Below are positions 4,112-51,400 of a DNA stretch of 64,000 nucleotides, piece by piece. Both the position numbers and the translations under genes were made by a program. Every line of letters starts with the position of its first letter. Position 1 is the first letter of the stretch. The notes below the pieces were generated by a model. That model had not been told where the DNA came from, ran no database searches, and saw nothing but the letters and a program-made list of their open reading frames with translations. Origin of the DNA: Laetmonice hystrix (taxonomy: Eukaryota). Location of the stretch: the NCBI GenBank assembly GCA_965235115.1, contig OZ249436.1, forward strand, positions 38,068,001-38,132,000, read 5' to 3'.

Positions 4112-6178
4112 GGGTGTGTATAAAACGAAGACCGAAGACCTAAGACCTGTAAAAAACAAAGACCTATAAAACGAAGACCCTACCAGGTAAAAAACAAAGA
4201 CCTATAAAACGAAGACCCTACCAGGTAAAAAACAAAGACCTATAAAACGAAGACCCTACCAGGTAAAAAACAAAGACCCTGGCCAAAAAAACGGAAACGA
4301 ATGCTACTATCGGTTTCATATTTTCTGGTCGTCCTCTCACAACCAAAAGGACCATTTAGGCAGAGTATGGCCATAATCGGTGCAGTGGTTATGACTATTT
4401 GCATTGGTGTTCTATATCAGTGGACAAATATACTGAGAAAACATTACCATAGTAACGCAAAATAGACATGCGATGCTTAATCACAACCAAATTTTACCCA
4501 ACGTTAGAGAGGAGCGTTATATACTACACCTACCAATTGCAGTTCAATCCGATTAGTATGTTCTGAGATATTTGAAATTAAAAAGGTATAAAACGAAGAC
4601 CCTACCAGGTAAAAAACAAAGACCCTGGCCAAAAAAACGGGAACGAATGCTACTATCGGTTTCATATTTTCTGGTCGTCCTCTCACAACCAAAAGGACCA
4701 TTTAGGCAGAGTATGGCCATAATCGGTGCAGTGGTTATGACTATTTGCATTTGTGTTCTATATCAGTGGACAAATATACTGAGAAAACATTACCATAGTA
4801 ACGCAAAATAGACACGCGATGCTTGATCACAACCAAATTTCACCCAACGTTAGAGAGGAGCGTTATATACTACACCTACCAATTGCAGTTCAATCCGATT
4901 AGTATGTTCTGAGATATTTGAAATTAAAAAGGTATAAAACGAAGACCCTACCAGGTAAAAAACAAAGACCCTGGCCAAAAAAACGGGAACGAATGCTACT
5001 ATCGGTTTCATATTTTCTGGTCGTCCTCTCACAACCAAAAGGACCATTTAGGCAGAGTATGGCCATAATCGGTGCAGTGGTTATGACTATTTGCATTGGT
5101 GTTCTATATCAGTGGACAAATATACTGAGAAAACATTACCATAGTAACGCAAAATAGACACGCGATGCTTGATCACAACCAAATTTCACCCAACGTTAGA
5201 GAGGAGCGTTATATACTACACCTACCAATTGCAGTTCAATCCGATTAGTATGTTCTGAGATATTTGAAATTAAAAAGGTATAAAACGAAGACCCTACCAG
5301 GTAAAAAACAAAGACCCTGGCCAAAAAACGGGAACGAATGCTACTATCGGTTTCATTGTTTTTTACCTGGTAGGGTCTTCGTTTTATACCTTTTTAATTT
5401 CAAATATCTCAGAACATACTAATCGGATTGAACTGCAATTGGTAGGTGTAGTATATAACGCTCGTCTCTAACGTTGGGTAAAATTTGGTTGTGATCAAGC
5501 ATCGCATGTCTATTTTGCGTTACTATGGTAATGTTTTCTCAGTATATTTGTCCACTGATATAGAACACCAATGCAAATAGTCATAACCACTGCACCGATT
5601 ATGGCCATACTCTGCCTAAATGATCCTTTTGGTTGTGAGAGGACGACCAGAAAATATGAAACCGATAGTAGCATTCGTTTCCGTTTTTTTGGCCAGGGTC
5701 TTTGTTTTTTACCTGGTAGGGTCTTCGTTTTATACCTTTTTAATTTCAAATATCTCAGAACATACTAATCGGATTGAACTGCAATTGGTAGGTGTAGTAT
5801 ATAACGCTCCTCTCTAACGTTGGGTGAAATTTGGTTGTGATCAAGCATCGCGTGTCTATTTTGCGTTACTATGGTAATGTTTTCTCAGTATATTTGTCCA
5901 CTGATATAGAACACAAATGCAAATAGTCATAACCACTGCACCGATTATGGCCATCCTCTGCCTAAATCGTAAATGGTCCTTTTGGTTGTGAGAGGACGAC
6001 CAGAAAATATGAAACCGATAGTAGCATTCGTTTCCGTTTTTTTGGCCAGGGTCTTTGTTTTTTACCTGGTAGGGTCTTCGTTTTATAGGTCTTTGTTTTT
6101 TACCTGGTAGGGTCTTCGTTTTATAGGTCTTTGTTTTTTACAGGTCTTAGGTCTTCGGTCTTCGTTTTATACACACCC
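4112..6178. mobile_element. Foldback-type (Mutator/MULE-like) non-autonomous palindromic element, 2067 bp
   Basis: Termini gggtgtgtataaaacgaagaccgaagacctaagacc and its reverse complement. 9-bp TSD TCCCCACCT at 4103-4111 and 6179-6187. The arms are built from 38-bp subrepeats and 346-bp tandem units, with the inversion axis at about 5356. Confidence 0.88.
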
Positions 6179-6670: not shown

Positions 6671-9600
6671 ATGGGAAACAGTGACACCAAATTAAATTTT
6701 AGAAAGGCTGTAGTACAGCTCACGACGAAAACCCAGGTACGTAAACACATTAATCATATTCGATGTAGTTTGAAGATCATATTCAGTAAGAAAAATCGCA
6801 ACGATCAGTGATGGGAAAACGCCCACGTCAGGTCTATTCTGAGTGTGTTTGTTTTGGGGACCCGTTCAGGCGTAGGCGTACCGCCGTCCGTAGGCGTAGG
6901 CTGGCCACACTCACAGACTGAGTCTGAGACTGTGAGAGAGAACAGTGCCCCAAAAATAAAATGGGCTTTCAGTTTCTGTTTCATTAGTTTTTTCCCTAGC
7001 TGGGTCATGACTTTCATGGTTTTTATTTGGTAGTCTTTGGGAAAATACTGGGGTTTTTGGACTTAGGACAATATCTTTTCGGGGTCAAAACTTTCTAAAA
7101 ATTTTTCTCCCCTGGGCCGGGGCCAGTTGCATGATTGTCCGTTCGTTAAAATTCTCATTGAAAATACATGGGGAAATTAACGAAGTCATGCAACTGGCCC
7201 CGGGATCAAATTGAGAGTTTTCTAATTCGCACTTGGTTATTTTGCTGGCATTCTGGCAAAATAAGTAAGTTTGACTAAATATACCGACACGAAACAATAT
7301 GTTTGGGTTACTTAATTAGGTTAAGGTTAGGCCTAGGAATCAGGGATGAAAGTTTTCAGGAAATTTCCTGAAATCAGGAAATTTGAAAAAATCCCCCCCC
7401 CCCCCCCAAGAAATAACACCCAAAAAAGGAAATAGGCCTAGATCTATAGGCAAAAGAGGTAGGCCTAAGCCAAGGCTAAGTATTGCCCTGGACTGTGTGG
7501 TGGGCAATTAATATCAAATGAAACAATATCCCCTTCCAGGACGTTTTTTAACACCATGCAGCTCAATATATCTCTACCTGCCAAAGTTCGTTTATAGATG
7601 GGGATATTAGAGTGTCTCAAACCCGTCCAGTGTCACGGGTGCCACCGTGCATAGGCCGGTCTGCCGGGGGTGCTGGTCCCTGTAGCTGTGGTGACATCGC
7701 TCACATAGACCGGCCCACGTGGGCTGACTTCTACCGGCACGCGGTGGCGTCTGTCCCGTCTGGCAGGCACGGCCCCTGTGGTGAGAGCGACTCACCTCAG
7801 GTAATGACTTCAGGCAAAATTGATGGTCAGGCAGCTGCGAAGCCCGTTGATTCAGGCTTGCCATTATGCCATATCCATGCGCGAGTTTTGCCTGAGCGCT
7901 CACTTAGTGATAGCAACGAGACTATAGACAGACCGGTCTGTCTAGTCCCGGTGATAGTGATTAGGCTGACGAACTACGCACCATCACGGGGGTTGGTCAA
8001 AGCGTCCGACGATAAAAGCGTCCGAGTCAATGTGTCCGCCGCTTGAGTCAATGTGTCCGCAGTTTGAGTCAAAGTGTCCGGCGATAGGAGTCAAAGTGTC
8101 CGCGGGTCCAAAGCCAAAAAGGCCGTGGGCCCGGGGTTCAGGCCCAGTCAGGCCCGGGCGGGCAGCACGAACCCTGGCTCACCTGCCGGACCTAGGCCTA
8201 AGCGCAGCCAGTTTTTATAGTCGGATTTATTCATTTATGATTATGTATGGTAATCTGCTCTTACACTTTGACCAACGTCTCGGACACTTTGACTAATGAC
8301 CTCGGACACTTTGACTAACGACCACGGACACTTTGACTAACGACCTCGGACACTTTGACTTTTCACATCGGGCACTTTGACTAGCCCCCGGACACATTGA
8401 CTCGTCGGACACTTTGGCGATCGGACGCATTGACTATACTTCACCATCACAATGTCACTCCTCACAGGAAACTGGGTCAATTTAGTTCTATGAATCTGCC
8501 TAGTATATATGTCAGTAAGTTCTCATAATGTGTTCTTGCATATAAATTTGAGGATAGTGGCATTACGTAAGTGGTTTTCACTGAAGTTTTGGGGTTGTCA
8601 GGACCTTTCATTACATTTGTCGATCAGTGCAGGTGTCCTGATAAGACCGGAAGTGACAATTTTCACAACAACATGAGTGGCACATGGACACACGGGCTGA
8701 ACCACTGGACTCAGCGAAGCCTGTGTTGCTTGGCTGAGAGCCGCTGAGGGTCGTGACTGCTGAGGGTCAAGACTGATGGACAGCCTGTGTGGTCAGTCTA
8801 ACACATGGAAGCTGTTTGACAACGTAATCGGTTGCATTTTGGACGCTAAAAGCCGACTGGATTCCAATGTTGGAGAGAGACGGCAGAGCCAGGCAGAGGT
8901 TGACACTGACTGTGACTGAGTGACAGGCAAGCAACAGCCTTGAACAGGGGCATGGACTGATGAGTGATGGAGTCTATCCAGCAAATTTGCAGGGGTGGGG
9001 GGTTGAGGGGGTGGGATGGGGGGGGGGTGGCGACTAAATACTGAGGGCTAGGCCCTATAATATCGGGTGGATAAAAAAAAACGCCCCGAACTTTAAACTT
9101 TAATATCTCAAAAAGTATGCATTATAATTCAGTAAAATTTCTCTTAGTATCACTTCATGATATTATCTCTAGTATGTTAAAGTCTCAGGTCAATAGCTTT
9201 GATATTAATTCCGTGGCGATAAAAACAAAAATCAGTGTCTAAAAACGCAATGCCGGAATTAGGTCAAATATCATGCAGCTGCCAGGTGTTCAATTTGACA
9301 ACTGTTTGATGCACCGCATTGTACCTTGGGTAAAAAAATTTAATATTTAGTTTTTGCATGTTTTACAATATGTATAATGTTGTGGACCACTAGATATAAT
9401 AAAATAATTATGTGCTATTCCTAGTACTTTTAGAGAAAACAGATGTTTAATGTGCCAAACCCTACAGAGAAACAGTCTCGATCATCCAGACCCTCAGCGG
9501 CCGGAGCAGAGGGTCTGGAAAAGTTCCTATCTGAGAGTTGTTCGTTTCGTTGAGCCCGTAAGCGGCCCGTTTACTCGGTTCTAGTTTCCGGTTTGCTCGC

Positions 9601-27600: not shown

Positions 27601-29211
27601 TCTCAATTTTACAGGCTCGAAGGTCATGCTGTATTTATGCTTAAATTTTGTGTCATAATTTTAAAAGGGCGATGCTTTTTGTAAAACTAAATAATAAATG
27701 AGTAAGTCGACTTAGCGGAGTGTACGTGTCAGAAAGCCTGACAATGTTAACTTAGCGGAGTGTACGTGTCAGAAAGCCTGACGATGTTAACTTAGTGGAG
27801 TGTACGTGTCAGAAAGCCTGACAATGTTAACTTAGCGGAGTGTACGTGTCGGAAAGCCTGACAATGTTAACTTCATGGAGTGTACGTGTCAGAAAGCCTG
27901 ACAATGTTAACTTAGCGGAGAGTGTACGTGTCAGAAAGCCTGACAATGTTAACTTAGCGGAGAGTGTACGTGTCAGAAAGCCTGACAATGTTAACTTCGT
28001 GGAGTGTACGTGTCAGAAGGCCTGACAATGTTAACTTAGCGGAGTGTACGTGTCAGAAGGCCTGACAATGTTATTATGATCTTGTTGCCAGCCGACCCCA
28101 CCTGCCAGTCCGACAACCAGTGGTTCACCGCTGTCTGATCCAGAGGGAGCCGCTCGTCCCCCACTGAAGCGGGATTCGTCAGTATCGAGTTCGTCTAGCT
28201 GGGTGCCCACTCCTGACTGGGTAGGTATTGATTTCAGGGGCTCGGTTCAATGTACGAGCTTGTACAATGGCCTTATAGCTCGTAAACAAGAAAAAACTCG
28301 CTTTGCTATTATGACCTACAGAAAATACGAGCTCGTAAATTATGAGTGTTTTAAATGGTTTCTTGGTGCGATTGGCACTGATCAGTATTCAATATAGGGG
28401 GTTCTGGAAAGTTTACATTGTTCAAGGTTCACATTAATCTGTAATCTGTAATCTGTAATCTACAGGTGGGCTCATGGAAGCAGAAGTTGCCCCTGCAGAC
28501 CATAATGAGACTTCTCCAGGTTCTTGTGCCTCAGGTGGAAAAAATATGCATTGACAAGTAAGTATTCTCTGATTGTGAATTCCCGCACTACTATATGTCT
28601 AATCTGTAAGTACAGACCAGTGCAGTACAATATTTGTAGAGGTTTCAGATAATGCACGCTTTATTCTAGATTCATTTGTTACCATTTAGTCATTGAAGTA
28701 TGTAAGGTTAGAATAACCCAGAGAGCGTGGGTGTGTTGTTTGGTTAGGAAAGCTGCAGATGTTGTCTCATTGCAAGTCGCAAATTCTCATTGTATGGTTG
28801 TAATTCAGAGGGTTGACAGACGAGTCTGAGATCTTGAAGTTCCTGCAGCACGGTACCCTGGTCGGTCTACTTCCTGTACCCCACCCGATCCTGATCCGTA
28901 AATACCAGGCCAACTCAGGCACCACCATGTGGTTCCGAACGTACATGTGGGGTGTCATCTACCTGAGGTACGCACCTCTTCGACAACATTTTAATATTTA
29001 AATCACTCAGTCTCACGATAAACCCAGATTAACTGTGCCTGACGTGTGTTGTGGTCATAATCTTATTCGGTATCTTCTGTGTGTTACTTGTATTTATAAA
29101 TAGCGAAAAACCGTCATGATATAAACCAGGCCTTTCTGCTATTCCAGGAATGTAGACCCTCCGATCTGGTATGACACAGACGTCAAACTGTTCGAGATCC
29201 AGCGGGTATAA
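6671..29211 (+). CDS. HID1: HID1 (dymeclin-family dense-core-vesicle/Golgi protein), complete, 18 exons, 828 aa
   Basis: Exons 6671-6736, 11404-11617, 12153-12268, 12593-12637, 12922-13144, 16274-16551, 16795-16851, 17721-17952, 18200-18351, 18908-18986, 19350-19411, 19632-19734, 20005-20232, 27358-27545, 28092-28220, 28466-28557, 28809-28967 and 29148-29211 total 2487 nt with all phases consistent. It starts MGNSDTKLNFRKAVVQLTTKTQ (myristoylation-type MG start) and ends RNVDPPIWYDTDVKLFEIQRV*, matching recalled HID1 termini. Confidence 0.96.
7117..7203. mobile_element. Tiny Harbinger-like palindromic MITE
   Basis: ccggggccagttgcatga ... tcatgcaactggccccgg inverted termini around a ~50-bp core. 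No clear TSD. Confidence 0.5.
7988..8441. mobile_element. MULE/foldback-like MITE with tandem GTCAAAGTGTCCG subrepeats
   Basis: 9-bp TSD CACCATCAC at 7979-7987 and 8442-8450. The left arm has repeated gtcaa(a/t)gtgtccg and the right arm has repeated cggacactttgac. Confidence 0.82.
9063..10689 (+). mobile_element. Tc1/mariner-family deletion derivative with >100-bp TIRs and a transposase C-terminal remnant
   Basis: TA|tcgggtggataaaaaaaaacgccccgaactttaaac ... gtttaaagttcggggcgttttttttatccacccga|TA. Positions 10342-10452 read CWEDISLSEIGKCTGSWKKRLRAV*SENRGPIDHLL*, typical of a mariner/Tc1 transposase C-terminus (W..I...I...SW.KRLRAV...GG.I.H). Confidence 0.8.
17382..17549. mobile_element. Harbinger-like MITE
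   Basis: Inverted termini ggggccgtcttactaa ... ttagtaagacgggcctc. Confidence 0.55.
18450..18811. mobile_element. MITE with long (~80 bp) subterminal inverted repeats and GAG...CTC termini
   Basis: gagggactt ... aagtccctc. Internal tccgcgtggtggcagcac...gacgaaatgctaatct is mirrored by agattagcatttcgtc...gtgctgccgccacgcgga. No clean TSD. Confidence 0.65.
27711..28073. repeat. 40-bp minisatellite, about 9 copies, in HID1 intron 14
   Basis: Unit cttagcggagtgtacgtgtcagaaagcctgacaatgttaa, with 42-bp variants. Confidence 0.95.
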
Positions 29212-39007: not shown

Positions 39008-42000
39008 ATGTGTATCGGCTCGTCCTACTCGCACATCTCTGAAACATACAAGAATCCAAGCCATCATGGGCTAGGCCTACGTAATTTACGGCGAAGAATT
39101 CTGCAACATCCTCCCAGAATCTTGAGCCCTTGTGGTATTTTAACCATATCCTGATAAACGGCAACTAACTCTTATACAAAGGTGGGATTGATCCAACTAT
39201 GGAGGGGTTGTTTTGGCGGTTTGGGGGGGGGGGGGGGGGGGACAGTGATACTGGTACCCTCCCTGGTAACCCAACCACCGCTAAATATTGTTGGTCATTC
39301 CTATGCTGCAGACCGTTAAAAACGTAAGACGTGTAGCAGCTGGTGCACATTAACGTAGAACGTGAAAATTACACCTCGTCGGTAGGTCGTCATGGACTGC
39401 GCCGAGTTTCAGTGACACAATGAAGATTTGCGCTAACACAAGAACTCACAATGATACATTTAATAATCGGAGATAGTCGTCCCTCAAACTTTGATCTGGG
39501 GTTTCTATGAAAATATGTGATGTGTTTGATCACGCTAGCTACTGCCCGATATACAGTTTCAATCTTTATGTACTCTGTGACCACACAGACCGGTGTGGTG
39601 TATAGAAAACACGTCCATGCAGTTATTCTGGCCGGTAATACCCTCGATAACTGAAGGTTATAATTATAACAACACACCATTTGACAGAAATCCTTAATAT
39701 ACCCTAATAGCTCGGGAACCCTCAAAGGTGGGGGGTAGTGATTTCTTCCACTCAATCGAGCCTGGTATTAAAACAATAAATGATCTGTACACTACCAAGT
39801 CATGGAGTGATGCTACTTATTAAATCACACTTCAACATATTATCATTCTTTGGTCAAATCTGATTAATATTCCGAATCAACGCTTATGATCACATTTATA
39901 AGGTAACGCTGGGAAAAGAAAATTATATTAATGACCTCATGGGTACAATGGAAACCTACTATCGTTTCACGATTTCGAATAGCAAAATGTCTGGCCTTAA
40001 CCCTCGGCGCTCGTATTTAGAATGCGCTATCCCAGCATACTGTAGCTTCATCGCGAAGACGTCAATACCTTTCACCTCTGACGATGGCTGAGAGCATTTG
40101 GCCTCTGACAGCGGCTTGACCAGGTTCTGATCAAATATACTATTTCACACTCAGGATCCCCACAATACTCGTTTGTTCTGACTTCAAACCAAAAGAGGTA
40201 ACTACGAAATATGTGGCTCTAGCACAGTACGATTCCCATGCCAGGAAGAGGTCTAGGCGGGGGCGTGTGATTAGCGACCGACTGGGAATCGTAGTGTGTG
40301 GTGGGCTTTAGAATCATACGTTGTCATTTAAGCTACATTTCTTCAACTTAACATTGATCACTTTAGTGAAGAAAAAAGGTCCTTATATCTTGACAGTATC
40401 AAGAGGCGGCACAATTTCCTTCTTCTCAACTCTGGCCTGTCAAATTTGTGTAATACAGTGTGCTTTGATATGTGGCTGTTATTTATCACAGCTGTTTGGG
40501 GAAGTAATAATAACCAGGGAAATACTCTGCCGTTTAATACTGTCCATTACAACCAACAGACCAGCAGTAGGACATTAACACAGGTCGGTTATGTCCTCAC
40601 CATTCTAAAGGTACTTGATGGAAACCTCTCTGATAGAACTAATATATACCAAAGTGATGTCACAAACGGGTCTTACCCCTGGTGAACCGACAACAACCTA
40701 CAAAACACGTGTTCATCTCAAGAGATTCAAATTTTATCTGGCCTAGGGCCTACATCATGGACTTATCCTGACCATCAGAAGTAAAATATCTGACAGGTAT
40801 CTGGAAGTAAACTCAGAAAAGAGACTGCGTGTGCTGTACTTGACCTAATCACATGAACAACAAATATGTCACCTCAAGATGAGTTAATTGAACTCCTTAT
40901 TTAAGAAATAACTCAGACAACCAGTTACTAACTCAGTTACCATGATCTCAAATTACCCGGTAGACGTCTACCAGATTTCTGATCGCAAAGCTTTCATAAC
41001 ATGCATTTCTGACTCTGTGAAAACCTGGGTTACCACAGATAAATGAACAAATACATCTCAGACAAATCGCCTCTCATTATCAATTATAGATCAATATATC
41101 CTACATGTAAGATGGATCAGGTTAGTCTGTGTTACGAAGACATAATTGAGGTGAAAGTAAATCATAAATAAGCTGTATTCGACTTTATGCTAGCCCCTCT
41201 GTCCCGTAAGCCCGGATACTAAGACAATATGTTCAGTAGAACTGCCGCACATCCTAGATCAGTTGAGAAAGACTGACCGACAGCGGGATCAGATGGACTC
41301 CCGTTTTATCTACCTCTCCTGCTCATATGCACCGGTAGAATCACTGAGATGGAAAACAGTTTCCAACTGTTTGATGACTAAGAGTAGTAAGACCTCCAGG
41401 AATACAAGACCTCCAGGAATACAAGGAATACAGTTAACAACCCCACCCTACCCCAGCCCAGGAACGGTAGGTTTGTATCTGGGGCTCCCTGGGAGGTCAC
41501 ACATCCACACACCTTGCTGCGTCTACCCGCACTGATTAAAAATAAATACTATATATACCAACTGTCTCTTTATCCTCTGTACATCCATGACTTCCCAAGC
41601 ACTTGTATAAAATATAAATATAACCTACGGACCACCATGTCCTGGATATCTCTAAATCAATGTCCGCATAATGGCAAAATGAGACGTAGCCAGAGACTTT
41701 CTGATGTACATTGTTTTCAATAATTTCCCCTCATAGCTGCATCACGAGTTTGACAAAGAATGCCTACTCGGGTAAATCTGAATACACAGTCGTGTTTGCA
41801 GTTGTTGGCTGCTTGTGTAGACTACAGTCATCTGGAGCTTGGTCACAGCGATTAGCCATGGCATTGTGGCATAGCACCCATCCATATACATGTTATGAGG
41901 GGTAGTCCCCCTGTAACTCAGACTCCCTTACCATCCAGCCCGTAATAAACATGAACTCATTTGTTACATTGTGGTTGGTATGACTGGCAGCCTCCGTGGC

Positions 42001-42456
42001 CATCTTACTACTAGATCTCTAAATATGGTCAGATTGGTGATTAAATGAAATAATGCAAAACTTACTTGTGGGCAGCCCAGAACCTCAACACACCGAGTAT
42101 AACAGCATTCAACTCCAAGTCAACAGGTACTGAATGTAGTGATATAAAACAGGGATTCCCTTGACAACGACAGTATGCTAGTAATGTACTGAAGACAAGA
42201 GACATGTATCCTAAGACATATCCTATTGTAGCTTACCAATAGAGGCCATGTTCGCAATGTGACAACTACAAGCAGCACATGATGACATACGATATGACTT
42301 GACGTCATGCACAAATTACCTCCCCCCCGTTACCCACTTCAACCCACACCAATCCCTTGATGTGTAATGATACCATATTGTAAATATCTTCCCCGGCTGA
42401 AGGTTCCTGGAATGTCTGCCCCTTGCCACCTGTGTGGCCAGTGGACCGACTGGCCT

Positions 42457-45400
42457 TCAGCGCTTGAGGAGCTGTTTACGCTGCTGTTCGAGCAGTCCTT
42501 CGAGGTGATCGGCCCGCTTGAGTGCTGCCTGGTACTGGCCCTTTAGTTGGTTCACTACCTCCTCCTTCCTGACCATGGCCTGCTTCACCCTGGAACGACA
42601 TAATCATCCACGTCACTCGAGTACCAACAAGTACACATCAAACAGACAAACACCGGGTGAATCATAACTTTACACTGGAACGACATAATCATCCACGTCA
42701 CTCGAGTACCAACAAGTACACATCAAACAGACAAACACCGGGTGAATCATAACTTTACACTGGACGACATAATCATCCACGTCACTCGAGTACCAACAAG
42801 TACACATCAAACAGACAAACACCAGGTGAATCATAACTCGAGAACTGGTACACATCAAACACACCATCCAGGTAAACACCAGGTTAATCATAACTTCACC
42901 CTGGAACGACATAATCATCCACATCACTTGAGTACCAACAAGTACACATCAAACAGACAAACACCAGGTGAATCATAACTCGAGTACTGGTACACATCAA
43001 ACACACCATCCAGGTAAACACTGGGTGAATTATAACATCACCCTGGAACGACATAATCATCCACGTCACTCGAGTACCAACAAGTACACATCAAACAGAC
43101 AAACACCAGGTGAATCATAACTTCACCCTGGAACGACATAATCATCCACATCACTTGAGTACCAACAAGTACACATCAAACAGACAAACACTGGGTGAAT
43201 CATAACTTCACCCTGGAACGACATAATCATCCACGTCACTCGAGTAGCAACAAGTACACATCAAACAGACAAATACCAGGTGAATCATAACTCGAGTACT
43301 GGTACACATCAAACACACCATCCAGGTAAACACCAGGTTAATCATAACTTCACCCTGGAACGACATAATCATCCACGTCACTCGAGTACCGGTATACATC
43401 AAACACATCATCCAAGTAAACACCTGGTGAATTATAACTTCACCCTGGAACGACATAATCATCCATGTCACTCGAGTACCAACAAGTACACATCAAACAG
43501 ACAAACACTGGGTGAATCATAACTTCACCCTGGAACGACATAATCATCCATGTCACTCGAGTACCAACAAGTACACATCAAACAGACAAACACCAGGTGA
43601 ATCATAACTCGAGTACTGGTACACATCAAACACACCATCCAGGTAAACACTGGGTGAATTATAACTTCACCCTGTAACGACATGATGATCCACGTCACTC
43701 GAGTACCAACAAATACACATCAAACAGATAAACACCAGGTGAATCATAACTTCACCCTGGAACGACATAATCATCCACGTCACTCGAGTAGCAACAAGTA
43801 CACATCAAACAGACAAATACCAGGTGAATCATAACTTCACCCTGGAACGACATAATCATCCACATCACTTGAGTACCAACAAGTACACATCAAACAGACA
43901 AACACCAGGTGAATCATAACTTCACCCTGGAACGACATAATCATCCACGTCACTCGAGTAGCAACAAGTACACATCAAACAGACAAATACCAGGTGAATC
44001 ATAACTTCACCCAGGAACAACATAATCATTCACATGACTCGAGTACTGGTACTGTCGGTACATGTCAAACACACCATCTAGGTAAACACCTGGGCCCGGT
44101 TTCTCGAAACATCTCAAGGCGTACTTAAGTACCTTATGCTCAAATTGAGCACGGAGGCGTTTCTCGAAACTTTTTCACGTACTTAAGCATGTGCTCAACG
44201 GCCTGATTCTGAGCATGCTACCATAGCATGCTCAACTCTGAGCACCATCATCTAAAATTAAAATTAACTCATCTTCCACACTCCAGTTAGCAGCCCTCTT
44301 CCTTCCTTTCCTAACTTTGCCCTTCATGAGTGTCTTTGTGAAATAATAATGCGAAAAAACGACCGCAAAAGTCGGCAGGAACATTTGCAAGTCGTGTTTA
44401 AAAATACGCGCCAGCAGACAATCGCTCAAACAACTTGACACACTTATTGTTATTGTGACGTAATCTATTGTCACCAGTGACGTCTTCATTGTCGTCAGTG
44501 ACGTCGTTCATTGTCATCAGTGACGTAATAGAATCTTGCATTGTCTAGAGTTGAGAACGGGTTCTCAAGCCTGAGATGCTTGGAGAAACGGCTAAGAACC
44601 GCTGAGTACGCCATTGAGCACGCCAGTTGAGCATACGTTCTCAAAAATCCTTGAGATGTTTCGAGAAACCGGGCCCAGGTGAATTATAACTTCACCCTGG
44701 AATAACATGATTATCCACGTCACTCGAGTACTGGTACACATCAAACACACCATCTAGTTAAATACTCTGTGAATTATAACTTCACCCTGAAACGACATAA
44801 TCATCCATGTCACTCGAGTACTGGTACATGTCAAACACACCATCCAGGTAAACACCGGGTGAATTATAACTTCACCCTGGAATGACATAATCATCCATGT
44901 CACTCAAGTACTGGTACACATCAAACACACCATCCAGGTAAACACCGGGTGAATTATAACTTCAACCTGTAACAACATAGGATTCACACATATTACTTGA
45001 GGACTGGCACCAACTGGACAAACACCAGATTGATTAAAACGTCACTCTAGAGGCCCGTTGATACCTTATTCTATGCGAATGGGCGCAGTAATCTTGGGGC
45101 CGGGGTACGGCTCTCCTATTTTTTCCTTCGGGACATTCTGGAAGTTGTTTGGGTAACCTACACCTGGGGACCGTTTCATCAAAAACTCGTATTTTATGAG
45201 CTCGTATTTTCCATAGATCATAATAGCATAATGTACGAGTTTTTTCTCGTTTATGAGCTATAAGGCCATTCATATACAAGCTTGAACAGTCTTAGTGAAA
45301 CGAGCCCCCGATACCTGAATCCTTCTATTTACCCTTAAAAAATCACACATCACTCAATTCTTCTATTTCTTCTGAAAAAAATCTTGCATCAAACAAACCA

Positions 45401-48400
45401 TCCAGTCAAACACCAGTAGTAATATAACGTCTTCCTGTAACCAATCACACACTGCCATCTAAAATATGCATCGTCACCATGCCATGTTTATACACGTATT
45501 TGTTATAATTGATCCCTCACCGTTTATGTACTTCCTCCATTTCCTGTTCCTTTGTCTGGGTGACCTCCTCGACCTTGGTCTTGGCACCCTGGAGTTCAAT
45601 CTTGTGCTGCGCTTTCAGTTCAGCCATCTGGTTCTTCACTCGTCGGTTTTCCTCGTCAGTCAGTGCCAGGCGGTCAGCAAACTCCTGACGAATGACCTCG
45701 GACACACGGTCACGTTCTTCATTCAGTTTGTCCAACAGCTGTCGTTTATCATAAACACATCACATTATCACACTATGTCCGTTGACCTTATCTTAGGATG
45801 CAAGATAAATGTCTAGGTTCAAGTAATTATTTTGTCTAGTAAAAAGGACACCCAAAGCTGGGGGGTGTTTCAATAGTGAATAAGTGTGTCGGACTGTCCA
45901 ACTGGCGACGGATCATTCTGGAACATACAAACAAAATGGGAGGGATGGTCCATCGCTCGGTCGGAAGGTCTGACGCGCTTATTGAAACACCCTTCTGATC
46001 TCTTCCCATCTCCAATGAATGTGTTAGAATATTAACTGTAAATTGCTATTTACCCTTTTTATTTCTGCCACTTCTCTGTCTTTCTGTTTTAAGGTCACTT
46101 TCCTACGTTCATTTTCTCCTTCCATTTCAGCAAGTTTTGCCTGGAAGAACATCAAAGAATGGTTATAATGACATGACATGGATTTGCTTTGTAAAAAATC
46201 ACAAAATCCCTGTAACACCAGTAGGATTTGTCATCAGTGATGTATCTGAACGTTTACTTTATACATGTCAATTGTTGCGATGACATTATGATATTCAAAA
46301 ATATAATTATTTGAAAAGTCCAGGTGAAGAAATCATAGTTCACTTAATCGTCAAGCCCCCAAGACACATATATTTTTCATTTTGGGTGCGCTTCCTGCAA
46401 TCACTTCTAGTTGAACAGTATGACAGATCCCATGTCTCTGATAATAATTTTGAGAAACATTTGCAGTATGATAGATGCGAGTTCAGCCAACTCACCTTGA
46501 TCTCATTGTATTTCTGGGATGTTAGCCTCTCAGACCGTTCAAGTTCGGCAATTTCTGTCTCGTACTTGTCACGCATGCGTCTTAAAAAACAAACAAAAGT
46601 TCCACATCATGTAAAAGAAAGTTTCAGAATTATGAGGACTAAGACACTTAGACAAAGCATCTAAAGAAAACATCTTCAATCATATGCTATATTTGTAAAT
46701 AGTGATGCAATCACTTCTCGACATTTAGATAACAGGATTCGTTATTATACCAAGGTGCAGTAAGTTAGACCAAGTACCAGACAACCGTTTCCCACGGGTA
46801 TTTTAGTCTTTGTTTTTGGGACGCTTTGTTTCAGATAACAAGGTACTGACTTGATTCTGTTCTCGGCCACTCTCTCACACTCGTCCCTCGCCGCCCGGTT
46901 GTCCTCTTCCAGTCGACTGATCACCTCCTCAATCTCCATATCACGATCTTTTCTCACCTAGAGGACAGTAAGAACCGCAGGCTATTCTTGATTCCGACCA
47001 TCCATGTCCAAAAACTGATCTGGTAATTACAGATTTTACTCATGGCAGATTAGACCAAGACCACACTGAGCTATATTATCTCATTATTTGGTTTGAATCC
47101 AATTCAATATGTATTTAAAGCAATCCAGAAAAAAATCAGTGAGCCTGCTTCGCCTTACATTTTCCTTGAGGTCTCGCTCCTTGGAGAGCAGCCATGTCTC
47201 TTGTTTCTTCTTGTAGTTCTCCTCCCAAGCAGCCTTCTCAATGGCAAGTTGTTCCTTCAACTGTTGTAACTCAGTCTGCAGAGGAAACATTCAAAACGGC
47301 TCATACTATACTGAATCAAACATGTCAGTGTGCTATGCTCCTATATACTGATGTCTTACATTAAGTGTCATTGCATGGATAGACCATGCAGAGGGTGATA
47401 ACCCGGGGGTCGGCCGATTTCAATGAAATTTGGTGGACATGTGCACTTGACCAACTTATGAAAGAATGTACGCTAGCAGCCAAATCCATTCGGTTCTTTC
47501 CGAGTAAATGCCAAAAAATTATTTGGAGGTCTCTGGAGGCCATTTTCCAAGGATTTTCAAGGGGTTATTTCCTGTGGCCCTCAACAGAAAACGGTAGAAG
47601 CTACAACATTGCCCCTTTGAAAGCCACTTCCCCATCATATGGCCCACTAAATGGCAGAAAATCATAAAAATATTTCTTTAAATCTTGGAGATAGGGGGCA
47701 AAGTATTGCCCCTACCCACAACGTGGTATTATCTTAAGGCATCTTCAGGGTCCAATATCTCAACTGCGGCAGGGATCTGGATGTTGAAACTTTGTGGAAA
47801 TATTGCCAGTATCATGGTCTTTCAAAATCAGAAAGAAAAAGTTTGGGCGCTACTGCCATTTTTGAATGGTAGCCGTGGACATTATAACGATTTTACGGCA
47901 CTTTGCAGTGCTGCCCTCTAGCGTTAATGTGTAGAACTACAGGCCCCTAGCGGTAATGTGTAGATATACAGCCCCAAATAAGAAAAATCTGGTTTCAGGC
48001 CGAACAAAATGTTTATTTTTTATCTAAACCCAGTGGCGTATCCAGGGGGGGGGGTTCCAAGTATCCCGGACCCCCCCCCCCTTAAAAAATTACTATGTTA
48101 AGGACATTTTGGTAAACAAAAGGGGGTGTAAAATGCATCATTTTAACCAAAGGAAACCTTCATATTTCCACGCAAGATGTCCTGAGATTGCATTATTTGA
48201 TGCCTTTTTGTTAAATTTCCTAGAGGAGCATGGCCTAATGGCCATTTCTCAAGTACCTAAATTTCGGAAACCCCCCTTTAAAAAATTGAGGATCCGCTAC
48301 TGAAACCAGTGGCCGAAATATCACGTTTTTCAGGCTATGACGCACCAGGACAAAATCAGGGCCGATCAGGTTCCGATAGCCTAAAGCAGTACTAAAGGAG

Positions 48401-51400
48401 GTGATCGGGCGCAGTACCAGTGCCACTTCTTGTCGACGACGAAGCATAGACTCTAGCAACTCCCGATCGCCCCCCCCCCCCCCGAATTAATATCAAAAGT
48501 TATTTGATAGGCCTCCTAACCCAAATGGTAACAGGTCAACCCACACCCAGGCGACTCGCCCTGTCAACTCGCACCTCACCGCGGGCAGCCCATCGGTGGG
48601 CGGGCCTTGGCCCACTGCATCTCCCGGCGTACCGTCACTGCGTCAGCCACATGCCCGCCAGTGCCAGTGGACTAGCGGAGGCCAACGTGACTGATTCGCT
48701 TAGGGAGGCCTATCAAACCTACATCACCTCTCGTCGCCTCAACTAAATCGAATTTGACTTCAATAAAATCAATACGACCCTGACTAATTCTCAAATCGGC
48801 TTTGGATCTGCGTGGAGACAAGGGGTCAGCGGCCAAACGGGAGCTTCGTAGCCAAACAACACCTCCCGGAAGCGAACGTTCTGTTCTCCCCGTACTAGAG
48901 AGTTCCACTAATCGACCCAACACTGGCGATCCCCGAACCGGAGAATTAGAAGGCATTCAGTTCAAGAGAAAGAAAGTTACAAGTGATGAAATTCACGACA
49001 TTTATAATATTTGTCAAAGGCAAACAAAAACTCCCCCATGTATTCGGAGTGGTCGTTGTGGTGTCGGCCCTTTCGTTCAACATGCCCCCTGGCGACAGTT
49101 TCTGCCACTAGCCGTTATAGCTAAAAACCAGGGATGATCACGGCGCTCAGTAAAAAAAGTGAAAGGAGCGCCCAAACTTTTTATTGTTTTGAATGAAAGA
49201 CCTACACTTGATGTCACTTATGAGCAAAAATAATTGTCCCAATCCCTGTGGCAGTGGAGATATCACAGTGTGAAAATGGTGTACTTTTCAATATTTGGGC
49301 TCTTTAGGGGGACAGTGCAATTTTAAGGGACATAATACCTTCAATTCCAGGATTTTCAGAGAAAAACATTAATACGAGAAGATGGCATAAGACCTCTACT
49401 TTAATATCCCTATAAGTAATATGTGGTCCTTTGGCTAGGAAAGGAATGAAAAATCGACAAAATTGGCCATTTTGTAAAAAAAATCCTCCATTTTTTTAAG
49501 GGAAATGAATAGAAACGGTTAATGCCCCCTAAATCTTGAACAATGTGATTATTCGCCGAATGGCTTTACCTGCCCTAACCCTACCCCAAGACCAAACTTT
49601 GGTGCAAATTTGAGCCCAATCCGTTATCCAGTGGGTTATCACCTCCTGCAGATTTTTGCATGGTCCACTCATGCAATGACACTTAAAAGCATCAAAAATG
49701 GAGAGCGTCCAGAAATTTGATATAATTCCCAGTTTCCTGAGATGTACCCCACTACTGGTTAGCATTCAATACTGTAAACCTACACTGTGTCTCCGCTCCT
49801 GTTCTTCTCTTGCCTTCTCAAACTCTCGTTTCATTGCCTCGGCAGTGTGGCTGTGGTTATCCTCTAGCTGTCTCTGGAGTTTGTCTAACTCGGCACGTTG
49901 CCGCGCTGATGATGCGGCCAATCGCTCCTTCTCATCTTGAACCTCTGCATACAGGCGACGCCTCTGCTGCTGGTAGGCCTCCTCCTCCTGCTGCAACTGT
50001 TTCTCATACCTTCAAACAGATGGAACTAGGCTTTCAACTTCACAATATTAAACAGATGGAACCAGGTTTTCAACTCCATAATATCAAACATATGGGACCA
50101 TGCTCTCAATATCATCGTATCGAACAGCCAGAACCAGGCTTTCAATTTCATAATATAAACCAAAGCCAAGGACAGCTTTTTTACCCTAGCATAATCCTTT
50201 CTCATCTTAGCCTATAAACCTTGAGCTAGTATATATTTTGATGATCTTAGACAAAGTATACTGGTAATTTAACATAAACAAGATCCTGTCAGAGTAACAT
50301 GCCCAACTTGGTACGGTGTTAATTATCTGTGGGTCTGGGAATTATGCGTACTTTGTATTTTTGAGATACAGTTCATGTGAGAATATCTTTGATACATCAT
50401 TCACAAAGAATTCTTCATATATATGTCTTCATCCATCATTTGTAATAAGTGGTAATCTTAAAGTGTTTTATAGATATCTGGGCTTCCGCTAGCCGTTCGC
50501 CACATTCGCATTGGCGAAAGCAATAGCAAAGTGGAATATTTTTAACAAAACACACCATGTTTCCGCCACACTGGCACACTTTGAAATCCGGATATGGAAG
50601 AAATTCATACCAATATTTCTGAAACGTGCACACCTCCTCAGGTTGTATGTTTTATTTAGTTGGAGAAAAATATGGCTACACAAATTCTGATGTGGCTAAA
50701 GAATTTGGTTACCCATTTAGCCATGGTGGCTAAGGACTATTTTTGCATAGAGCAAGCCAAGGATATGAATCATCCAAAAAGGCCCTGATCTTGATTAACC
50801 TCACAAGGTCACTCCTTGTAAAGGAAAATGGTGACAAATGAAACATTATATATGACTTCCTTTCTTTCCATTATACTAAGTATATCTTGAACACTTATAT
50901 TTAATCTGAGCACAAAATAAATTGGCATGCTTGTTGCCCCTCAAGGTCACGGAAAATCACGCCAAACAAAAATTCATATCCGACATCCTATACCTACATC
51001 GTCCCTCATATGTTTCTTCTTACACCACATTTGAAAGAAATTGGCATCGTTGTCCGAGTTACTGCTCTAAATGTGTTAACATCCAAGATGGCTGCTGAGC
51101 AGCCATTTTGAATTATATACATGTAGAAAATCTAATTTGACCTGTGTGCAGGGACGGTCATTCTCAGACTGTGTCCCTGATCATTGTGTAACGTTTCAGA
51201 CAATTTGACCAATACACTTCTGAGAAATCAGACGGACATACACATGTACAGACAGATGGAGGGCCAAATTGAAGCCCCCGACCCTTTGGGTCGGGGGCTT
51301 TATTATTTTTTATACAATCAGAGTCAAGGACCACTCACGTCTGTCTTGCCAGTTCTCTCTCACGAGCACATGCCGATTCTTTCTCTTTTGCCAGCTGGTC

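Follow-up and report, generated by a model that had tools for sequence, protein, structure and literature searches.

A tandem array spanning the 3′ splice site of the last CEP131 intron: probably a tolerated minisatellite with essentially silent decoy acceptors

How is an intron spliced when its own 3′ splice site has been copied many times over upstream of the exon that it serves? The question is raised by the last intron of the CEP131 gene in Laetmonice hystrix, which lies on the minus strand of the window analyzed here (the whole 64,000-nt stretch, positions 38,068,001 to 38,132,000 of contig OZ249436.1). This intron is made up almost wholly of a tandem array, with older degenerate units and two transposon insertions, and the unit of the array spans the junction between the intron and the terminal exon. 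Our best reading is that the genome is prone to minisatellite dynamics, of which the array would be a tolerated by-product, and that it is not a regulator. We consider it probable that it is a minisatellite of the "mirage" type, whose decoy acceptors are essentially silent.

The host gene was identified by tblastn. The Argopecten (bay scallop) query, a protein named "centrosomal protein of 131 kDa-like," was colinear with the minus strand in 15 high-scoring segment pairs, from 55090 down to 42460. Further full-length matches named CEP131 came from amphioxus, sea urchin, a bat, and a fish. Overall identity was about 61% to the scallop protein, 58% to that of Branchiostoma lanceolatum, and 59% to that of sea urchin; to judge from these values, the host is an invertebrate and not an amphioxus. 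The two exons that flank the array were 68% (penultimate exon, Argopecten residues 1039–1112) and 75% identical (terminal exon, residues 1112–1155) to the scallop protein. In a local copy of Pfam, the 293-aa exon matched an IQ motif and nothing else was returned, and Rfam gave no match in 41500–46000.

Four sequencing runs, all from one sample, contain the locus as assembled contigs. None is recorded as RNA, and one of them, X4 (58 million letters), was classed as RNA-like from its own spliced contigs. X4 contained four GT..AG joints in the CEP131 gene. One of these joined 45521 to 42589 and skipped 2,931 nt, and 45738 was also a spliced boundary; the exon coordinates proposed in an earlier reading of the letters alone (hereafter the sequence-only reading) are therefore those found in the RNA. 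The donor is cg/gtgagg at 45521/45520 and the acceptor is ccag/GGTGAAG at 42590/42589, both on the minus strand, where the slash marks the splice junction. The joint was carried by a 280-nt contig with a depth of 22.6, which did not branch in the 129 nt past GGTGAAG and which fully accounted for the X4 depth in the bin that holds the exon start. Contig depth in X4 was zero over 42589–43990 and 44715–45076, and none of its contigs lay on the array. The presence of the junction contig and the emptiness of the array in X4 together show that the canonical junction is made, and that no decoy-spliced or intron-retaining form reaches the level at which contigs are retained. Although the splice signals are duplicated, the canonical joint was the only one seen in these contig-level data from one run. 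This agrees with the sequence-only reading, which expected the spliceosome to pass over the other copies and use the most distal one. The coordinates of the features are collected in Table 1.

Table 1. Features of the last CEP131 intron and its flanking exons (positions in the window)
Feature	Position	Strand	Basis
Penultimate CEP131 coding exon (...EEVHK + cg)	45521..45738	-	Translation; RNA-like joints at 45738 and 45520/45521
Last intron, 2,931 nt	42590..45520	-	RNA-like joint ("skips 2931, CT..AC"); nhmmer unit map
Two decayed stretches that resemble the unit and extend to the donor: U1 (45340-45434) and U0 (45435-45520)	45340..45520	-	Global alignment to A unit
Older A-type block: three 90-nt units, a part-unit upstream of the transposon, one degenerate unit	44675..45045	-	Tandem Repeats Finder, nhmmer
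Non-autonomous DNA transposon resembling a miniature inverted-repeat transposable element (MITE), 586 bp, 33-nt perfect terminal inverted repeats	44092..44677		Inverted-repeat search
Young homogenised block: 13 B units, one full and one MITE-split A unit, 4 "a" units; 13 AG-bearing decoys	42590..44093	-	Tandem Repeats Finder, phasing, nhmmer
TCGAGTGAC, branch-site-like motif 23-31 nt upstream of AG	42612..42620	-	Putative branch-point role
Terminal exon, coding part (G + VKQAMVRKEE...QLLKR + TGA at 42457-42459)	42457..42589	-	Translation; RNA joint
Purine-rich AGGAAGGAGGAGG, 20 nt into the real exon and coding for RKEEE	42558..42570	-	Candidate exonic splicing enhancer

The array occupies 42590–45045 of the minus strand and is built from 85- and 90-nt units and four truncated 57-nt units. 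Tandem Repeats Finder reported overlapping periods of 85, 90, 142, 227, and 312 nt across 42583–44979, with scores up to 1806. When the repeat was phased as TTATRATT...CCAG-GGTGAAG, 22 units were recognized between 42590 and 44966: four A units of 90 nt, a further A unit interrupted by an insertion, thirteen B units of 85 nt, and four "a" units of 57 nt, which stop at CTCGAG and have no acceptor. They follow one another in the order A A A A+MITE B B B B a B B A a B B B a B a B B B, which shows a higher-order pattern. A unit comprises 78–83 nt of intron and GGTGAAG, that is, 7 nt of exon. B units differed from each other at 0–9 of 85 positions and from their own consensus at 1–5 positions, and the unit that carries the true acceptor was one position off this consensus. 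The TCGAGTGAC motif was exact in 13 units and present as a variant in three more. In its head-to-tail arrangement and in the size of its units, the array has the traits of a minisatellite.

A profile made from the units (nhmmer) gave 26 same-strand matches in 42590–45045, one marginal match at 45394–45430, and none elsewhere in the 64 kb. The older A-type block had a period of 90 nt with 88% matches and nhmmer E-values from 4e-4 to 2e-22. Between this block and the donor, two stretches could be aligned globally to the A unit. The alignment of U1 had a z of 6.2, and none of 2,000 shuffles was as good; that of U0, which has 86 nt and extends from gtgagg through ttacag, had a z of 3.2, with 16 of the 2,000 shuffles as good. 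The whole intron may thus consist of its own copies, some old and some young, together with two transposon insertions.

The larger insertion, the MITE, sits inside one A unit. It has at least 40 dispersed copies in the genome at 91–99% identity, many of them at 99%, and a contig of the DNA run X1 skips exactly its 586 nt and so represents the empty site in the same sample. The insertion looks young and is possibly heterozygous.

How good are the copies as acceptors? The sequence-only reading had counted about 18 decoys, and we found 18 acceptor-region copies besides the real one. AG was kept in 17 of the 18, the copy at 44011 having CTG instead; four of the AG-bearing decoys (44966, 44876, 44786, and 44696) belong to the older block. 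The 21-mer TTATGTCGTTCCAGGGTGAAG occurred 17 times on the minus strand at up to three mismatches, between 42583 and 44890, where none is expected by chance. Two copies fall outside this count, a degenerate one at 44966 and an indel-bearing one at 42759. Ten occurrences of TTATGTCGTTCCAGGGTGAAG were perfect; one of them is the real acceptor, which leaves nine perfect decoys. Of the ten decoys listed earlier as essentially perfect, nine are so; the exception, near 43043, has GGTGATG. Over 21–36 nt upstream and exactly 7 nt downstream, the perfect decoys are identical to the true site. Beyond +7 the exon goes on with CAGGCC and the repeat with TTATGA or TTATAA. Pseudo-sites identical to the authentic site and a boundary element that spans the junction are thus both seen in the array. 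Joined to ...HK(cg), 15 of the 17 AG-bearing copies would read RVKL-stop, as had been claimed for most of them, one RVML-stop, and one RLKL-stop. A CEP131 protein spliced in this way would lose its conserved last 41 residues.

The two decoys nearest to the real acceptor (42674 and 42759) have in common a G>T change at +1 and a G>A change at +4 (ccag/TGTAAAG), and one of them has lost a T in its pyrimidine tract. The changes at +1 and +4 are synonymous in the CEP131 frame (CGT GTA AAG, still RVK) and abolish a local hairpin. Since the two decoys share ancestry, their changes count as one event and carry no statistical weight.

Such similarity could make the array leaky. In that case a small fraction of the transcripts would be spliced to a pseudo-acceptor and would encode a protein ending ...HKRVKL, a non-adaptive noise that would rise with copy number. 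The identity of the decoys to the true site on both sides of the junction favors this possibility, as do their transcription before the true site and the position of the stop, which in the last exon leaves no exon junction downstream; minor isoforms would also be compatible with RNA data at contig level. We nevertheless regard leakage as unlikely, given the empty array and the unbranched junction contig in X4, and given that the published mirages and the variable number tandem repeat (VNTR) of human F7, both considered below, yield no aberrant mRNA (PMC3902484, PMC1557585). The sequence-only reading had expected decoy products to escape nonsense-mediated decay. It was right that no exon junction complex would lie downstream of the stop. 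Immunity does not follow from this, because a decoy product would have its 3′ untranslated region (UTR) lengthened by 0.2–2.5 kb, and a long 3′ UTR can also trigger decay.

The sequence-only reading had also offered the array as a copy-number-tunable switch for a truncated CEP131, in which array length would set the ratio of full-length to truncated protein under selection. This proposal found no support in the RNA, in which no contig lies on the array and no decoy product was seen. What speaks for it is geometry only, namely decoys that are in frame, a stop that follows immediately, and a position in the last intron. Relatives with 72–80% identical exons have no array and an intron of 53–60 nt or at most about 264 nt, the truncation would remove a deeply conserved segment, and a second array that abuts a splice junction in CEP131 (see below) points to mutational bias rather than to a function specific to this gene. 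We therefore hold a selected switch to be highly improbable. A heritable, length-variable dial, with decoy splicing that depends on copy number or tissue and with a stable mRNA for a CEP131 ending ...HKRVKL, seems to us very unlikely; if it existed, CEP131 without its C-terminal 41 residues would modulate the function of centriolar satellites or of the cilium.

To establish where the array came from, it matters that its unit is confined to this locus. A query of two units (170 nt) matched only G000:C1:38110589-38112964, the array itself, in the 627-Mb genome of the same species. At up to two mismatches, the 21-mer was found 16 times here, and elsewhere in the genome only on C19, where three copies of an unrelated repeat contain it. 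An origin from a dispersed repeat was rejected on this ground, as the C19 matches have just 26–27 nt in common with the unit and are part of another repeat; a dispersed satellite or transposon-derived repeat was likewise rejected, as the unit was found at no other locus in the genome. The C19 copies (G000:C19:20705136, 20745703, and 20827599; L013–L015) contain TTATGTCATACCAGGGTGAAG(T) and show no further similarity to the unit. About 0.6 chance matches are expected genome-wide, and the resemblance of these copies to the acceptor motif is treated as a probable coincidence.

Could the array be an artefact of assembly, or a satellite or transposon of a dispersed kind that only looks like the acceptor? 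The contigs built from DNA k-mers break within the array, so that its copy number is that of the assembly, and all four runs come from one sample, which leaves some room for the first possibility. However, the units carry ordered and distinct variants in their higher-order pattern, one of them contains the dated MITE insertion, and the DNA contigs reproduce junctions between units with no differences, for example at 43645–43759 and 43931–44113. The array is 2.4 kb long, shorter than a typical long read, and its unit is present nowhere else in 627 Mb. We give this explanation next to no credence. In the DNA run X2, the unit junction at 43645–759 had a depth of 28.8 as compared with about 55, a mere hint of length polymorphism.

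The orthologues named CEP131 all read ...EVHKR/VKQAI, VKSAI, or similar, and this sequence is conserved from bivalves to mammals; the terminal-exon codons G GTG AAG are therefore ancestral. Unspliced gene calls in other species enter intron sequence directly after HKR, so the position of the intron is old as well. In one relative (L016/L017), the penultimate exon is 75% identical and the intron has 53 nt, with the sequence gtgagtgtgctgaggtggtaatcgagtgacctttgctggattttcattcccag/GGTGAAGCAAGCC; in a second (L018) the exon is 72% identical and the intron has 60 nt. In the closest relative found (P0146, 80% identical), the gene table places the next CEP131_C open reading frame 264 nt after the penultimate exon. 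The L016 intron and the 3′ part of the unit have in common ggta-M-tcgagtgac, a brief run of pyrimidines, and ccag/GGTGAAGCA, and the TCGAGTGAC motif also occurs in L016, 24–32 nt upstream of AG. Aligned globally to the unit's 3′ 53 nt, the L016 intron gave a z of 3.4, with 5 of 2,000 shuffles as good. Taken together, the ancestral RVK, the tiny introns of relatives that resemble the unit, and the restriction of the unit to this locus indicate that the array arose by duplication of the intron–exon boundary, and uphold the view of the sequence-only reading that the satellite is built from the terminal exon's own 3′ splice site.

These comparisons support a growth of the array from a duplication that would have covered most of a tiny intron and 7 nt of exon. 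The last intron of CEP131 would ancestrally have been very short, as it is in the relatives, and probably measured about 86 nt in the lineage of the host. A tandem duplication of about 85 nt would have taken in most of it together with 7 nt from the start of the terminal exon (G GTG AAG), and unequal crossing-over would then have expanded and homogenised the copies. With the two transposon insertions, these would have enlarged the intron to 2,931 nt. Every full unit carries TCGAGTGAC, a modest pyrimidine tract, and AG, and 17 pseudo-acceptors lie upstream of the true one as a result. This history of duplication is inferred. A first duplication of the whole intron through microhomology, by way of the GGTGA that the donor (cG/GTGAgg) and the exon start (aG/GGTGAag) have in common, is attractive but remains speculation, supported by the similarity of U0 to a unit (p ~0.008).

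If the decoys are so similar to the true site, what could direct the spliceosome past them? The true 3′ splice site has 50% pyrimidine at −25..−4, at the low end for the acceptors of the gene (0.41–0.73). The first 50 nt of the real exon are 74% purine and contain five GAR-type motifs; the corresponding sequence after the decoys is 42–56% purine, contains none, and consists of U/G-rich repeat. Purine-rich exonic enhancers recruit U2AF to weak acceptors. Recognition of a rather weak 3′ splice site would then depend on the sequence downstream, and the last copy, the only one that precedes a real exon body with the enhancer-like AGGAAGGAGGAGG run, would be chosen. The relative L016 has GAAGAAGGAGGAAG at the same place as AGGAAGGAGGAGG, and keeps it because the run encodes KKEE. 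On the composition of these sequences, the choice of acceptor is probably set by the exon body.

Other ways of separating the real site from the decoys were considered and set aside. The sequence-only reading had favored definition of the terminal exon through its poly(A) site. The 3′ UTR extends for at least 545 nt in the RNA contigs, the first AATAAA or ATTAAA stands 1.9 kb beyond the stop, and none is present in the last intron; at this distance the poly(A) signal hardly separates the real acceptor from a decoy, and definition by a close signal was rejected. Across the duplication junction a small palindrome arises (CCAGG.GUGAA and UUCACCUGG) that pairs the decoy AG. As the main means of masking the decoys, this hairpin (minimum free energy −10.6 to −15.7 kcal/mol) was rejected, and the pairing of CCAGG.GUGAA with UUCACCUGG may at most contribute slightly. 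Recursive or nested splicing of the units as mini-introns was also dismissed. The units resemble recursive splice sites (ratchet points) in that an acceptor is followed by a donor-like GTGAAG in a long intron. They differ in having AG/G GTGAAG and not AG/GT, and recursive splicing is ruled out because of the extra G, which re-splicing would leave behind (AG/G/GTGAAG) with a shift of frame; GTGAAG also lacks the G at +5.

Several points weigh against our account of a tolerated array with silent decoys. The RNA comes from one run and one sample and was available as contigs only, so that use of the decoys below about a tenth of the canonical level, or in other tissues, would be unseen; a decoy product, once made, could also be lost to decay on account of its long 3′ UTR. 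The true acceptor is not the weakest of the gene, since that of the penultimate exon has 41% pyrimidine, and only composition marks the purine run as a candidate enhancer. The hairpin is no better than in shuffled sequences (z −0.1 to −1.6) and is missing from the two nearest decoys. Finally, the similarity between the first 86 nt of the intron and the unit is only suggestive (p ~0.008).

Arrays of this kind have been described before. In amphioxus, "mirage" minisatellites are known from Adh3, troponin C, the globins BflGb6/9, and PGBD5; they duplicate splice sites and keep the AG/GT signals, yet normal mRNA is produced (PMC3087553, PMC3902484). As in CEP131, their tandem units span an intron–exon boundary, with unit lengths from tens to about 160 bp, and evolve in concert within a cluster. 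The mirage of BflGb6 has the same build as the CEP131 array, consisting of the 3′ end of an intron together with an exon's 5′ part. The CEP131 array differs in its non-amphioxus host, in including only 7 nt of exon, and in its larger size (17 AG-bearing copies). It also lies in the last intron, so that a misused copy would give a stable-looking truncated open reading frame.

The 37-bp VNTR in intron 7 of human F7 is a second precedent. Its first element spans the donor of exon 7, and five to nine identical 5′ pseudo-sites follow (PMC1557585). Only the site adjacent to the exon is used, and the pseudo-sites are experimentally functional but out-competed (Borensztajn et al. 2006, PMC1557585). 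Both arrays have a boundary element that spans the junction, and in both only the exon-adjacent copy is seen to be used. The CEP131 array is a mirror image of the F7 repeat: 3′ and not 5′ splice sites are duplicated, the real element comes last and not first, and its sites are known from sequence and RNA contigs. Other decoy 3′ acceptors and decoy exons, such as In100 of caspase-2, are intronic sequences that resemble 3′ splice sites, can bind splicing factors without being used, and regulate a neighboring choice. In contrast to decoys of the In100 type, the CEP131 array shows no sign of a regulatory effect on a nearby splice choice. On present evidence, the kind of array found here is one already described (mirages, F7 IVS7 VNTR, where IVS7 is intron 7) and points to no new regulatory mechanism.

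The locus is a natural experiment on the choice of 3′ splice sites, which separates the core of the splice site from its exon context, as the F7 VNTR did for 5′ splice sites. The 17 candidates have in common with the real site a branch-site-like motif, a pyrimidine tract, AG, and the exon's first 7 nt, yet in the RNA only the copy that precedes the true exon body is seen. The locus also shows that an intron of 53–60 nt can grow about 50-fold by amplification of its own boundary, and it adds a mirage-type array in a host other than amphioxus.

Also in the last CEP131 intron, at 45077–45310, lies an element of about 150 bp with imperfect terminal inverted repeats (GGGGCTCGTTTCAC... / ...GATGAAACGGTCCCC). 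In the DNA runs its summed k-mer depth was about 54,000, as compared with about 50 in unique sequence. A copy number of very roughly a thousand is suggested by this, summed depth not being the same as copy number.

A second and older array was found elsewhere in CEP131, on the minus strand at 50012–50160, with a 36-bp unit in 4.2 copies and 74% matches. It ends exactly at the acceptor ...ctgtttgaag/G of the exon that starts at about 50009, and its upstream copies end in tttaat, tttgat, or ttcgat and have no AG. This may be a decayed array that was likewise seeded at a splice junction.

Other tandem arrays in the window were located at 4149–5356, 6050–6141, 27710–28073, and 8263–8402. They include a 346-bp period at 99% identity, whose 38-bp sub-repeat recurs inverted at 6050–6141, a 40-bp unit in nine copies, and a 22-bp unit in 6.5 copies, and are consistent with a minisatellite-rich genome.

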